Shown: positions 54,138 through 59,869, counted from the first letter of the stretch. The stretch is 64,000 nt of DNA from Chlorokybus atmophyticus (GCA_009103225.1 RHPI01001168.1:16222-80221); one strand, 5' to 3'. The notes: generated from the letters alone by a model not told the origin. A program made the numbers and translations.

Positions 54138-57100
54138 CTACAAGCTCCCTGCCAATGGTGCAGTAGCTGCTTGTGCAATGGTGGTGGCCTCAGCTGAGGC
54201 CGTGTCAACGGTTAAGCTAGACAGCGGCGGGATAGTCATCTTGCCCAAACGTATGAGCAGCTGCTTGTGAACATCCTTCCCATTCAAAAGGTTGACGCGT
54301 CTCAGCCGCTCATTTGGCATGTGGTGGTTGCATGTCGCTTGCGCTATTGGAATCGCCACCATAGGCGCCTCCAGTGCAGTCTCCATGAAGGAGGCGACCG
54401 GCAAACTGCCGCCCTCGCGCACGTACAACGGCTTCACGCCCCAGACTGCCTCAATCGCCTCATCCGCAGCCCTGTCCGTTCATGAACAAGTCAAGCAATG
54501 CCAACCAACACAGAGCAGGTAGACAGACATGCGCATGCATGTTCCATATAGTATACACAGAGATGGAGAACAACCGCAGGGGTATCACCCCACACAGTAC
54601 ATGTGGCTATGCGCTTACTTGTAAAACTCGTGGTAAGGGTCTCCAAGCCACCAGTGTGCAATATGGTGCACGCGGACTTCAAGTCGATTACATGCAGACC
54701 TGCGCTTCGCAAACTCGTGCCGGACGTGCTCGGTAAACGCTGTGATCACCTTGTTTGGGTCTTGATCTGGCACATGCCGAATGCACACCTGCATCCGCCA
54801 TCAAGTATCAGTCATGATTACACGGCAGTGGGTAAACCATGACTACTCGTGTACGAGTACACAAGCACATGAAGATATTGTTTTCAGACACTATTACCAA
54901 CCTTGCCAACACAAGACCGTGGTATCAATGACCATCCATTCGTTGATGTCTCAATGGCCACAATGCTCACAGAGGGCTGTCGCCACATGCTCATCAGAAG
55001 CTCTTTTGGTGAACTGCCATTCAGTGCAGTAAGCCCGGTGGAGGCTCTGTAAGCCTCTGTGTCAAACTCCAGCTGCTCATAAAACAACTCTTCCTGCATG
55101 GGCAACAACGCATTAGGCACACAGGTCAAGCAGTAGCCATGATGGCCATCGCTGCCTTGCGTAGATCACAACGTTGCCCATGTAACACTACAACACCAGT
55201 CTTAACCACCAACCGCACCTGAGGTGAAAGCTGGCGAACGCCTTCATGAAAGCCATGAATGAGGATCATGCCCTTGTCAACCAGATTCGACAGAATTGCC
55301 ACCAGGTCATTCAGTGGTTCATTAAAAGCCCCACCATCCTTTCCAGAATGGAGGTCCCTGGATGGTCCTGCACAGCAACAGCCTCATTGCCTGCATCAAG
55401 GGCAATCCAGCAAACACGCAAGCAACTGCATGTTGGCACTTTGGCTTGGACTTGCCTTCAATGTGGACGTTGAGACATATCATGCCGCGCATGCCGTACG
55501 TCAAGCATGGTCTGACATCGTTGTGCCATCTACAGCTGGAAGTGATGATAAGATCTGTGCCCTGCAGCAGACCAATAACGCGTGTTAGAATCACAGCATG
55601 CAAGATGTCGACTTGTGAACCCCAAAACGCAGCAAGTCTGGCACTATGACTTTGTGCTGAGTGCTCAACAAGTGCACAGGAAGTGGAACATACCGCAAGC
55701 CAGTCTGCATTTGCACGCACGGCGTCCTCAAATCCAAGCGACCGATTCTCATGCATGCCGTCAAAGATGAAATTGACGTTGACTTGCAAAGCACCCGCAC
55801 TCAGCAGCTCGCGCACACCAAACAATATCGCCAGGACTGAACCCTTGTCATCAGCAACGCCGCGCCCTACATAGTACCTGACAACAAAGTTGATACACCC
55901 TCAGCTACAACAGCATGATAGCAGCAGGCGATCGCTAAACACATCCTCGCATATTTGTACAGCTGCTAAACAGTGCTGGACAACATACACATGTCTTGGT
56001 GTGAGAACTCACCCATCAATGCACTGCAGAGAAAATGGATCACTATTCCAGCCATCTTCATTGGCAGCCTCAACATCGTAGTGACCATGATAGGTCACAG
56101 TTGGCTTGGATGGGTCCTGTGCCATGGTCATGTTATTAGCACAGGACCAGCTTGCATTGCGCATTAGCACTCAACCGCCGCAAGAAACGCGTATCATTCA
56201 CACTTACCACGACAAGCCTACCCAACAGGACTGGGTTCAGGCCCTCGACTGCCGAAACAAGCTTGACTTGAGCTCCCAAATCTTGCAACATCTTGGCAAG
56301 GTACTTGGCTCCTTTCCAGCACTGCACACAAGTAAGCTTGTGCAACATCTTGCTACACAGCAACCCTGTTCAAAGCGACTTCCTGTACACTGCGCACCTG
56401 ATCTTTGCATGTATTGTCGTTTTCATTGTACACGGTTTTGATGCTGGTGAACTCACGCAGCATTTTCTCCATCAGCGTGACTGTGGCTTCAGAACTTAAC
56501 TGCGTGGTTGGCCTGAAGTGAAAGTAGTGAGTGAAAAGGTACATGACACACTCTTACAATGAGCATGCATGCATTGCATGCTTTGCGTACCTGAACTCGC
56601 TTTGCATGGAAGACCCACTAGCATTTACTGCTGAGCGGCATGCATTTACCTGCGCAACAACCATCATGTTAGGGTCAGGTTTGGTGCTCCTTGGTACAAC
56701 GTGTCAACCACCCGCAAATGTAGTGTACCTTCCATACGCGCACCATGCCATCACTCGATCCACTCAAAACCCCATCAGATGTCGCTGCTAAAGCCAGAAA
56801 CACGCTGCCGTCTGTCGACAAAATGCGCGTGCAGTCATATGCATGCAGGTTCCAGCAGCGGATTGTTTTATCCGCAGACGCACTGTACAGAGTGTCGCCC
56901 CCAATGGCTAGTCCCAAGACGTCATCCTTGTGACCTACAAGCAAGCCGCAGCAAAGCTCAAGGACACTTTGCTGGAGTACAGGCAGTGCAGGCCACCAAG
57001 ATGGCACTCACCTGTCAAGACTGTTCTGCAACCAAGCGTCGCCATGTCCCACACTCTGATGGTGTGGTCACGCGACCCACTGAACAGACGGTGCTCATCT

Positions 57101-59869
57101 TCACAATGTGCAGCAAGGGCCATCACGCTGCCGCTGTGACCATACAACGTGGACACGCATATTCCAGTGACTGCATGCCAAACTTTAACCAAGGTGTCAC
57201 CAGCTCCACTGCATAGGTAAGGGCCACACAAAGCCAGGGCATATACACAACTGCAGTGCCCAAACTTCTGCAAGTCCGTCAGCCTTTTCACTTGGCGAAA
57301 CGGCACATGGAGTCCTGGAGATGCACTGGTTGTTGCTTCTCCAGAAGAGGGCGTGTTGAAAGACACCCTTGGTGACAGTAAGCCCTGAGAAACATTGTAC
57401 TGAGCACTGACTCCAGGTTACAACTGACACAGCATGTGCAAGACCGAACATGGTGGCACACCTGTGCTATGGCCAGAGCAAAGACAGAACCCTCTGAGTA
57501 CTCAATTGTTCCGAGACATTGGAAGGTTGTGAGATCCCACACTTTCACCAGACGAGTAGAAGAGCTGTAAAGGCGGTTGCCTTGCGTGGCAAGAGCAAAG
57601 ATGCTGCGGGTATGAGCAGCCACCTTGTGTATACATTCATAAGTCTTGGCAAGGTATGCTCTGATCTGACCATCGTGGGAGCCAGTCACCACCAAATCTC
57701 CCGCAACCACAATGGCCATAACACCTTTATTATCGCCTGTATGCGTGTGGAGGGGCACCGTAAGCACTTGACAATGCCAGGCACATATCTGACTACCGGC
57801 TACGAAGCTCACCTGTCAGTATATGATGAGGGACACAGCTTATTGCACAAGTGCTGGTGACTGTTGTGTCAGGCGTTTTCACACGCTGCATATCTTTCTG
57901 CCATGCAGATGAGTTAGCAACCCGGCAAACATGTTCAGCAGCATTGCAACTACGTTGATGATGCCCGCACAACCTGCTGCACTCCTGTGCCAGCCAGTGC
58001 CCCGAGACACCGAGATATTTCCTTTTTGAGCTCAGGACTTGGGCCAATCGGGACAATCAGGATGTCAACAAACTCGCCCTGCAACGGCATTTTATTGCAA
58101 CAAGTAACACAAATTGTTCGCCATAAACCAAGGGCAACAGTTGCAAGTGTGCGGCCAGCAGTCTCAAGCATACATGACTGCAACAAACCTTATGACGGCT
58201 CATCACAACCATGTTGTTGCGTGGCACAGGACTCCAATCAGCCGGCTCGTCCGTTATGGGCTCGGAGGACACAATGCCCATGCTTGCGCGCCGATCGCTA
58301 TGCGACAAGCGATACTCGTTGCGCTCCTCATCAGCACACTCAAACTTGGAACCAAAGGCGTAATAAAGCGTTGCTGGCGGGGAAGACTCCAGATTTGAAA
58401 AGCGAGTGGCAACCACAGTCTTCCCATCCGACACAACGAAGTTCAGCAGGCTCAACTCTTCACCAACTCCTGCAGCTGTGCAGGTTTCCTGGATAATGTT
58501 GATTGTGGCAACCATCTTCTCGCGAAGCTCATCTGGAGTATGCTCTGCGTGCACAAGGTATAAGCTGTAGTCCTAGCAGTGTCACCCAGAATGCATGCGT
58601 GCACAGCATGTTGCAACAATAGACTGACCTGCCATGGGGCTTTCCAACTGGTTGAGGAAAATGGCAAATGCAATTCCAGAATCTGATTGGAATGATGGGC
58701 ATGCCTCGTACACATCGTCTCGCAACAAAGCCAGCAACTTGCGCTGCACTTTTTGGAAGCCACCTATACCTCCATTGTGCATCCAGCAATACCGCCCACA
58801 TACAAACGGCTGTTACACATAAGCGTGAGTTTATTCAGCGAGCCACAAAACGCCCCTGCTCCTCACCCCTTCCCCAGTTCACGGCATACACATAATACCT
58901 GACAGTTCTGCTCTGTCACCGGGATGCCTGGGTATGCTGCTCGGACATGTGCAAAAATGACTGGTGCATAGATCTTGTTGGCCAGTCGCTTAAGGTTCTC
59001 ATTATTCCATGCGGGTTGAGTGCTGACAAAGACGCATGGGGTGGGATCGAGATGCGCATAGCTTTCAGTTGGAAACCACCTGCGCAAGATCAGTGTACAT
59101 CTGTGAGTGCACACCATGACTAGCATCCTTGCTGCGACAATGTGACAAGTAACCACAGCACATGTGCGTGGCACTTATAGTATTTTACTGCTACATGGTT
59201 GCAATCAGTGCAAGTAGTAGACAATATCAGTCAACCTACTGCAAGCACGTGCATCCCCCCCCCCCCCCCCCCCCCCCCCCCCCCCCCCCCCCCCCCCCCC
59301 CCCCCCCCCCCCCCCCCCCCCCCCCCCCCCCCCCCCCCCCCCCCCCCCCCCCCCCCCCCCCCCCCCCCCCCCCCCCCCCCCNCCCCCCTCTCTCCCCCCT
59401 GCAGCTCCCGCAACGGGGGGTGGGTGGGCAGGTTCTATACCACCCGCGCAGTTGGTGGCTATGCATTCAATACAAAATAAAGCAACATGCAGCGCATTGG
59501 CATGCAGGTGCTATGCGCGTACCAAGCCAGGTTGACCAACTACACGACACACGCACAGAGTGCACCTCAGACGCTATGGTCTCAGTGCATGCATTGCAAG
59601 CCAGAGCTCAACGATGATCATCAGTACACACAGCAATCGGCACTAATGTGCCATGGTACTTCTACAGCGCAGACATTGAGTGTATGTACACAAGCTGCTC
59701 TGATCATCCCTGCAGCTTACCCGATTCCAAAACCGTCACCGTTGAGGTATCCATGACCAGTGAGTCGCTCTTTGGCGTCGTACGACTGGCGAGTTAGGCT
59801 GCGATTGGGTTTGGTCACCAGGTCTGCCAGCAGGTAGGGCGCGCCCAAGTACACCATTAACCGGCACAT
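54138..59869 (-). CDS. Fusion protein: Dug3-like class II glutamine amidotransferase + WD40 repeats + Dug2-like M20 peptidase domain (19 exons, about 1145 aa)
   Basis: Starts MCRLMVYLG (N-terminal Cys) and contains NGDGFGIGW, PAWNNENL, FAHVRAA, WMHNGG and SLLNFVVSDG. WD40 motifs follow (GSHDGQIR, SGAGDTLVKVW, SGSRDHTIRVWD, SASADKTIRCW). The M20 domain follows (YHGHYDV, GRGVADDKG, CLTYGMRG, GPSRDLHSG, REGGSLP, HHMPNE). The hand-built exon lengths sum to 3438 nt with every splice phase consistent. Confidence 0.88.
59255..59388. repeat. Poly-C tract (poly-G on the sense strand) in intron 1 of the DUG-fusion gene
   Basis: Direct read; contains one N. Confidence 0.75.

Follow-up and report, generated by a model that had tools for sequence, protein, structure and literature searches.

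In yeast, glutathione (GSH) is cleaved to glutamate and Cys-Gly by a (DUG2-DUG3)2 complex, in which Dug3p needs Dug2p for its activity, and the released Cys-Gly is then split by Dug1p, according to secondary summaries (PMC9804317; bioRxiv 10.1101/2023.02.02.526638). Recent papers still call this DUG pathway fungus-specific, for example in the abstract of PMC9012958. Here we describe a locus of the early-branching streptophyte alga Chlorokybus atmophyticus in which a Dug3-type amidotransferase is covalently joined in one chain to its Dug2-type partner, a protein made of WD40 repeats and an M20 domain. The locus lies on the minus strand, at 59869-54138, of a 64,000-nucleotide stretch of genomic DNA (GCA_009103225.1 RHPI01001168.1:16222-80221), whose whole length we call the window and from whose first letter all positions are counted. 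An earlier note, drawn from the sequence of this DNA, had read the region as a single-gene fusion of Dug3 and Dug2. After following up this reading computationally, we regard it as close to certain that the fusion is real and orthologous to both Dug3 and Dug2. A real, expressed single-gene orthologue of the yeast pair is the best explanation of the locus as a whole, and we consider it likely.

One gene and one transcript

We rebuilt the gene model independently, by translating 59869-54138 in the three minus-strand frames and linking open stretches through frame-preserving splice sites. The rebuilt model reproduced exactly the single 19-exon, 3438-nucleotide frame of the earlier note. It encodes 1145 amino acids with no internal stops, from an ATG at 59869 to a stop codon at 54140-54138. 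Seventeen of the 18 introns are of the GT-AG type and one, intron 15 (55455-55368), is GC-AG. The two introns that link the amidotransferase to the rest of the protein (57973-57898 and 57812-57737) had been described as 76 nucleotides long, with canonical ends and matching phases, and this is what we found (GT..AG, phases 0 and 1). Overall, 7 of the 18 introns measure 76-79 nucleotides, and the linking introns are thus of the commonest length in the gene. An in-frame stop lies 13 codons 5' of the ATG, and Met-Cys is therefore the true start, as proposed. The features of the gene are listed below, together with their support from contigs of two public RNA runs (X1 and X2), which are complementary DNA (cDNA) for the reason given after the list.

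54018-59869, minus strand: Dug3-Dug2 fusion gene; coding sequence 59869-54138 plus at least 120 nucleotides of 3' untranslated region (gene model and cDNA contigs X1 and X2)
59721-59869, minus strand: exon 1, residues 1-50; Met-Cys start, with the Cys2 codon at 59866-59864 as N-terminal nucleophile (Ntn)
58899-59079, minus strand: exon 2, residues 50-110; GATase, HVRAA motif with Arg96
58629-58809, minus strand: exon 3, residues 111-171; GATase, MHNG (Asn122-Gly123) and SDS (Asp153)
58189-58544, minus strand: exon 4, residues 171-289; GATase, query of the profile search
57974-58078, minus strand: exon 5, residues 290-324; final conserved GATase strand FVDILIVPI, helix and start of the linker
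57898-57973, minus strand: intron 5, first linking intron, 76 nucleotides, GT-AG, phase 0; absent from both cDNA contigs
57813-57897, minus strand: exon 6, residues 325-353; linker with little conservation, low model confidence (pLDDT, predicted local distance difference test, below 50) at residues 322-339
57737-57812, minus strand: intron 6, second linking intron, 76 nucleotides, GT-AG, phase 1; absent from both cDNA contigs
57462-57736, minus strand: exon 7, residues 353-444; WD40 blades
57012-57384, minus strand: exon 8, residues 445-569; disordered insert at residues 446-475, then WD40 blades
56729-56934, minus strand: exon 9, residues 569-637; last WD40 blades
56591-56649, minus strand: exon 10, residues 638-657; linker between WD40 and M20, pLDDT below 50 at residues 640-661
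56398-56512, minus strand: exon 11, residues 657-695; start of the M20 domain
56208-56321, minus strand: exon 12, residues 696-733; M20
56013-56116, minus strand: exon 13, residues 734-768; M20, HxD metal site with His745 and Asp747
55694-55877, minus strand: exon 14, residues 768-829; M20, Asp777 retained, GMHE in place of GMEE (catalytic Glu replaced by His810, Glu811 retained)
55456-55561, minus strand: exon 15, residues 830-865; M20, Ser838 at the position of the CNDP2 metal ligand Asp195
55368-55455, minus strand: intron 15, 88 nucleotides, GC-AG, classical donor AAG/GCAAGT; skipped exactly, over 88 nucleotides, in both cDNA contigs
55219-55367, minus strand: exon 16, residues 865-914; M20 lid (dimerisation) domain, DLHSG motif
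54902-55093, minus strand: exon 17, residues 915-978; M20 lid domain
54619-54788, minus strand: exon 18, residues 979-1035; M20
54138-54471, minus strand: exon 19, residues 1035-1145 and stop; end of M20, HxxNE motif, disordered tail
59255-59382, no strand: run of 127 C (G on the gene strand) ending in one N, inside intron 1; assembly-gap artefact

The two RNA runs come from two studies. X1 contains 0.59 of the sampled words, which is near the exon share of the stretch, and X2 contains 0.46. We compared the contigs of both runs with window positions 54000-59200. Two further runs, X3 and X4, gave no matching contigs. One contig per run (3934 and 4009 nucleotides) lacks all 17 introns of this interval, including both linking introns, and a sequence without all these introns can only derive from cDNA. 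Each contig continues past 59080 with letters that uniquely match the end of exon 1, from 59722 onward, which proves the join between exons 1 and 2 across the assembly gap. The fusion is transcribed as one mRNA. The earlier note had proposed an RNA check across the linking junctions and had named separate GATase and WD40-M20 transcripts as a possible refutation; one contig in each of the two studies skips both introns, and such separate transcripts are contradicted by these single spliced contigs.

The X1 contig is identical to the window, while the X2 contig carries 17 differences, distributed over the amidotransferase, linker, WD40 and M20 exons. Since 14 of them are synonymous and only 3 are non-synonymous, and since they are spread across both halves and the linker exon, they indicate purifying selection along the whole frame. 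A pseudogene is ruled out by the intact frame, the expression and this ratio of 14 to 3.

We also considered that two adjacent genes had been misread as one. The first, Dug3-like, would end in intron 5, and the second, Dug2-like, would begin at Met327 in exon 6. Retention of intron 5 would indeed bring a stop after 7 codons, exon 6 has an in-frame ATG, and contigs can in principle merge overlapping transcripts. However, both linking introns are removed within single contigs of two studies and both have the commonest intron length of the gene. The gap between the two genes would be only about 60 nucleotides, and both strain differences in exon 5 are synonymous. This reading would moreover require splicing across intron 5 in a transcript that then terminates, with no stop codon, in the 85-nucleotide exon 6. 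Transcriptome assemblies also contain the same fusion as complete open reading frames (ORFs), in choanoflagellates, ichthyosporeans, an amoebozoan and a euglenozoan, and it is therefore not an annotation artefact. The spliced cDNA contigs and the fused ORFs of other lineages rule out two separate genes, a reading to which we assign next to no probability.

The fusion was already present in public data. An exhaustive profile search with exon 4 returned a protein of 1147 amino acids, 100% identical over the exon, which is the EukProt EP00898 entry of Chlorokybus atmophyticus (JGI model Chlat1 6899 / Chrsp52S06578). Public annotation thus has the fusion as one gene. The only difference from our 1145-residue model is at the junction of exons 15 and 16, where the public protein, longer by two amino acids, reads IEGKSKPKDLHSG and ours reads IEGPSRDLHSG. 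The public version of this junction is ruled out, as both cDNA contigs skip exactly 88 nucleotides (the GC-AG intron at 55455-55368). Homology searches and fold prediction used the 1147-residue database protein, of which four positions in one loop differ from the cDNA-supported protein of 1145 residues.

The cDNA contigs extend about 376 nucleotides 5' of the start codon, corresponding to window positions 59870-60245 if they are colinear with the genome. In that case the leader holds ATGs at 59980 (in frame, terminating before the main ATG) and at 60059, which are possible upstream ORFs. Long runs of C or G adjoin every N gap that we looked at in the window (15424-15510, 16018-16168, 33697-33944, 41001-41184 and 59255-59382), and look like artefacts of assembly or scaffolding rather than biology. 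Because such runs also border the other N gaps of the window, the run in intron 1 is an assembly artefact and the annotated length of this intron is unreliable. On the plus strand, at 61860-63640, exon-like ORFs show sugar-porter (MFS) motifs (PETPRWL, PESPR-type), which suggests a neighbouring transporter gene divergent from the fusion gene.

Domains and active sites of the two halves

The earlier note had described an amidotransferase, WD40 repeats and an M20 peptidase domain, in this order, and had suggested profile and architecture searches. Pfam matches to the single exons and to the database protein fall in the same order: GATase_4 (47.8 bits, cut-off 23, residues 43-287) together with GATase_6 (29.2 bits, cut-off 27), WD40 (93.8 bits, repeats between about residues 360 and 640) and Peptidase_M20 (64.6 bits, cut-off 24.6, residues 743-1109). 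Six other fused proteins have the same three Pfam domains, ordered as in the Chlorokybus protein. The resulting layout is a class II Ntn amidotransferase (residues 1-300), a disordered linker, a WD40 propeller (about 342-640), a second linker, and an M20 domain with its lid (about 664-1114). Pfam M20_dimer is significant in several relatives, and the Chlorokybus protein has the lid domain, including its DLHSG motif. The last conserved amidotransferase strand, FVDILIVPI, is encoded in exon 5, and therefore exon 6 is a true linker.

An AlphaFold2 model, obtained with 30 fused homologues as input, has a mean pLDDT of 83.2 and a predicted template modelling score (pTM) of 0.77. The only segments of low confidence are residues 322-339 (linker, end of exon 5 and exon 6), 446-475 (propeller loop), 640-661 (second linker, exon 10) and the C-terminal tail. 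The pTM suggests a defined arrangement of the domains, and the strand pattern of the model fits a propeller with seven blades. An M20 fold can also be recognised in the model.

The amidotransferase half retains Cys2, Arg96, Asn122-Gly123 and Asp153. Arg96, Asn122, Gly123 and Asp153 are invariant in 30 of 30 fused proteins and align with fungal Dug3, and Cys2 is present in every full-length N-terminus among the fused proteins. From general knowledge of class II amidotransferases, we take Arg96, Asn122-Gly123 and Asp153 to be the substrate and oxyanion residues. The Met-Cys-Arg start is common to the Chlorokybus protein and almost all fused, fungal and bacterial relatives. In a tree of 40 rows, in which Dug3 is represented by fungi other than S. 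cerevisiae, the fused proteins and fungal Dug3 form a eukaryotic clade apart from short bacterial class II amidotransferases (support 87/93), in agreement with the Dug3 identity claimed earlier for this half. Within this clade fungal Dug3 (99/96) and green algae (97/98) each form one group, and Chlorokybus and Mesostigma are sisters (97/93). Identity to fungal Dug3 is about 36-44%. Solved EgtC structures match this half at E 1e-15, and the EgtC model TIGR03442 scores 170 bits, under its cut-off of 218.65, which rules out an identity as EgtC.

The M20 half aligns end to end with human CNDP2 (E 1e-75) and yeast Dug1 (E 3e-70). In CNDP2 numbering it retains His99, Asp132, Glu167, His228 and His445, which are His745, Asp777, Glu811, His873 and His1087 in Chlorokybus. 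An active M20A dipeptidase has a complete two-metal site and a catalytic Glu, and here two of these positions are replaced: the catalytic Glu166 by His810 and the metal ligand Asp195 by Ser838. This degenerate site agrees with the label 'M20-like' that the earlier note had given to Dug2-type domains. Asp195 is replaced in every Dug2-type protein that we examined, fused or fungal, mostly by Asn, and by Ser in streptophyte algae and Spiromyces. Glu166 is lost in all four streptophyte algae examined (His, Gln, Gln and Asp) and in six other fused proteins (from Cymbomonas, Monosiga, Creolimax, Amoebidium and Entosiphon). Among the 37 proteins examined, His445 is also lost in Spirogloea, Chara and Cymbomonas. 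Most other fused proteins and all fungal Dug2 examined retain both Glu166 and His445. As a side point, the decay of the site appears to have gone further in streptophyte algae than in any other group examined.

These residues bear on whether one chain could perform both steps of the pathway, with the amidotransferase removing glutamate and its own M20 domain splitting Cys-Gly. The strong similarity to CNDP2 and yeast Dug1 and the five retained site residues speak for such an activity, but in Chlorokybus the catalytic base and a metal ligand are gone, Asp195 is Asn or Ser throughout the Dug2-type proteins, and yeast Dug2p itself reportedly lacks peptidase activity. We consider both steps in one chain very improbable, and we reject an active dipeptidase because the two catalytic positions are lost. 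Judged from its residues, the M20 domain of the fused protein is not a working peptidase site, and it is probably a scaffold or dimerisation domain.

The Dug2 identity of the C-terminal half, also part of the earlier note, is supported by the combination of WD40 and M20, which among the proteins found occurs only in Dug2-type proteins, and by a tree of the M20 part. In this tree, which has 37 rows and contains neither a Dug1/CNDP2 outgroup nor S. cerevisiae proteins, fungal Dug2 forms one clade (100/98) nested among fused forms, beside those of Entosiphon (96/87) and Soliformovum (99/96). As in the amidotransferase tree, green algae form a single clade (97/91), in which Chlorokybus and Mesostigma are sisters (95/81). 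Identity of the M20 part to fungal Dug2 is about 33-39%. The ESM Atlas contains a cluster of 67 members with the same fused architecture, whose nearest named clusters are fungal 'DUG2'.

Distribution and history of the fused form

A full-length search returned about 60 cluster representatives with both amidotransferase and M20 Pfam matches, from many lineages. They include streptophyte algae (Mesostigma, Spirogloea, Chara, Closterium), chlorophytes (Cymbomonas, Coccomyxa, Chlorella, Chloropicon, Picochlorum, Bryopsis, Caulerpa, Volvox and others), choanoflagellates (Monosiga, Salpingoeca, Mylnosiga), ichthyosporeans (Creolimax, Amoebidium), the amoebozoan Soliformovum, the euglenozoan Entosiphon and the dinoflagellate Symbiodinium. 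No land-plant or animal proteins were among the matches of this search. Domain mapping found all three parts in the same order in the fused proteins, nearly all of which start with Met-Cys-Arg. Split forms are represented by fungal Dug3-like proteins of 300-500 amino acids and fungal WD40-M20 proteins of 820-1070 amino acids, some of which are named 'glutathione degradosome'. Partial architectures also occur outside fungi, in Nannochloropsis (804 amino acids, WD40-M20), Klebsormidium (711, amidotransferase-WD40) and Stenamoeba (358, amidotransferase only), and may be truncated models or independent splits.

The trees of the two halves are congruent, and the halves therefore have one shared history, in which their junction dates back at least to the ancestor shared by green algae. 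A single change of state, at the fungal branch, is all that the gene trees require, and they do not by themselves settle its direction, fusion or fission. On the species tree the fused form is spread over Holozoa, Amoebozoa, Archaeplastida, Discoba and Alveolata, and the split form is confined to fungi. A single fission on the fungal stem accounts for this more parsimoniously than repeated fusions of the same kind would. Based on the species tree, the fused form is probably old and widespread, and the split fungal form derived by fission. A fuller scenario, to which we give even chances, is that the single-chain form is ancestral in eukaryotes, was split on the fungal stem, was lost in animals and land plants, and was retained in the algal and protist lineages listed above. 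If so, the fungal two-subunit complex would be a derived oddity, cytosolic GGT-independent breakdown of glutathione by the DUG route would be widespread in microbial eukaryotes, and its retention would reach the closest algal relatives of land plants.

The earlier note had left open whether such fusions already sit unstudied in databases. They do, both in the annotation of the Chlorokybus genome itself and in about 60 other proteins. Our literature searches found no descriptions of a fused Dug2/Dug3. A paper on Euglena lists, without comment, one transcriptome contig for 'GSH degradosome proteins' (PMC6351624). The fused form is thus a variant of an enzyme already known, and it sits unstudied in databases under names that are wrong or say little. 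The Chlorokybus locus is one well-supported member of this widespread form and not a singular event.

Proposed activity and comparison with known enzymes

By analogy with the yeast complex, the fused protein would work as follows. Once Met is removed, Cys2 would attack the gamma-glutamyl amide bond of glutathione and form a gamma-glutamyl thioester; Cys-Gly would be released and the thioester hydrolysed to glutamate. In yeast, the WD40 domain is reportedly the part to which Dug3p binds, and dimerisation reportedly goes through the M20 domain. Similarly, the WD40 propeller of the fused protein may hold and activate the amidotransferase, here within one chain, and the M20 lid may pair two chains, in which case the homodimer would be the counterpart of the yeast heterotetramer. 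A separate Dug1-type dipeptidase, rather than the M20 domain of the fused protein, would then split Cys-Gly. Because the nucleophile must be a free N-terminal residue, placing the amidotransferase first is the only possible order of a fusion. A Rosetta-stone argument, as made in the earlier note, adds little, since binding between the two yeast subunits was known before.

We hold glutathione to be a moderately likely main substrate. The main rival accepts the fusion as real and assigns it mainly to another gamma-glutamyl compound, such as gamma-Glu dipeptides, gamma-Glu-Cys, phytochelatins, glutathione conjugates or an EgtC-like intermediate of ergothioneine. Yeast Dug2p-Dug3p also cleaves gamma-Glu-Met (PMC7617739), the EgtC model and the EgtC structures match the amidotransferase half, and the scores of short bacterial relatives are close to those of fungal Dug3. 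In addition, streptophyte algae altered M20 residues that other Dug2-type proteins keep, which could accompany a changed handling of the substrate. On the other hand, the EgtC score stays under the cut-off, the amidotransferase falls together with fungal Dug3 and apart from the bacterial proteins, and its WD40-M20 partner is known, among the proteins found, only from Dug2-type proteins. We consider a different main substrate rather unlikely.

Several points weigh against a fused Dug3-Dug2 orthologue that acts on glutathione. The split between eukaryotes and bacteria in the amidotransferase tree has moderate support (87/93). The M20 part is about equally similar to CNDP2 (258 bits) and to fungal Dug2 (243-304 bits), and its tree was built without Dug1/CNDP2. 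The contigs are compatible with extra shorter isoforms, for example starting at Met327, which may exist beside the full-length transcript. Hydrolysis of the gamma-glutamyl bond of glutathione is ascribed to the fused protein by homology only, and the roles given to the WD40 and M20 domains are carried over from what is reported, in part in secondary summaries, for the yeast proteins.

With an expressed fused orthologue in a streptophyte alga that branched early, and with the same architecture in many protist lineages unrelated to one another, the "fungus-only" DUG pathway looks widespread. This points to a putative route of cytosolic glutathione turnover and of sulfur or nitrogen recycling in algae and protists, and the two-subunit fungal enzyme may stem from a gene fission. 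That no land-plant orthologue is among the matches explains the use of other enzymes in Arabidopsis (PMC9804317). The fused form also offers a natural single-chain version for biochemistry and structural work. We found no solved structures of Dug2 or Dug3. The solved structures nearest to the first half are 3mdn and EgtC, and those nearest to the last half are CNDP2 and Dug1.

When compared to known systems, each half of the Chlorokybus protein has relatives from which it can be told apart. The bacterial short class II amidotransferases (PDB 3mdn) and EgtC (4zfj, TIGR03442) are of the same fold family (Pfam GATase_4), with an N-terminal Cys and motifs of the HVRA, MHNG and TDSE type, but they are stand-alone proteins of about 285 amino acids, and the bacterial set lies outside the eukaryotic Dug3-type clade. 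The M20A dipeptidases Dug1 and CNDP2 (PDB 4g1p, 4ruh, 2zof) can be aligned with the M20 half from end to end and have most site residues in common with it, whereas the Chlorokybus domain has His for Glu166 and Ser for Asp195 and is preceded by an amidotransferase and a WD40 propeller.

The other fused proteins (Mesostigma Mv04038, Chara CBR_g22949, Coccomyxa, Chloropicon, Monosiga MONBRDRAFT_34060, Creolimax CFRG7853T1, Symbiodinium 'DUG2') share the architecture, order and Met-Cys-Arg start of the Chlorokybus protein, at 34-56% identity, with Mesostigma as its sister in both half-trees. Most members outside streptophytes differ from it in retaining Glu166, with Asn at position 195. Their database names vary and include hypothetical protein, 'Glutamine amidotransferase type-2 domain-containing protein', 'Cys-Gly metallodipeptidase DUG1' and 'Cndp1'. 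The closest described system is the S. cerevisiae (Dug2p-Dug3p)2 complex, which has the same three domains: an Ntn amidotransferase starting with Met-Cys-Arg, a WD40 propeller, and an M20 domain with a lid. Fungal Dug3 shares the active-site residues of the amidotransferase, Asp195 is replaced in all fungal Dug2 examined, and the fungal clades group with the fused proteins in both trees. Fungal Dug2 retains Glu166, whereas Chlorokybus and its streptophyte relatives have lost it. The yeast DUG complex is made of two subunits, whereas the Chlorokybus enzyme, known here from its sequence, is one polypeptide.

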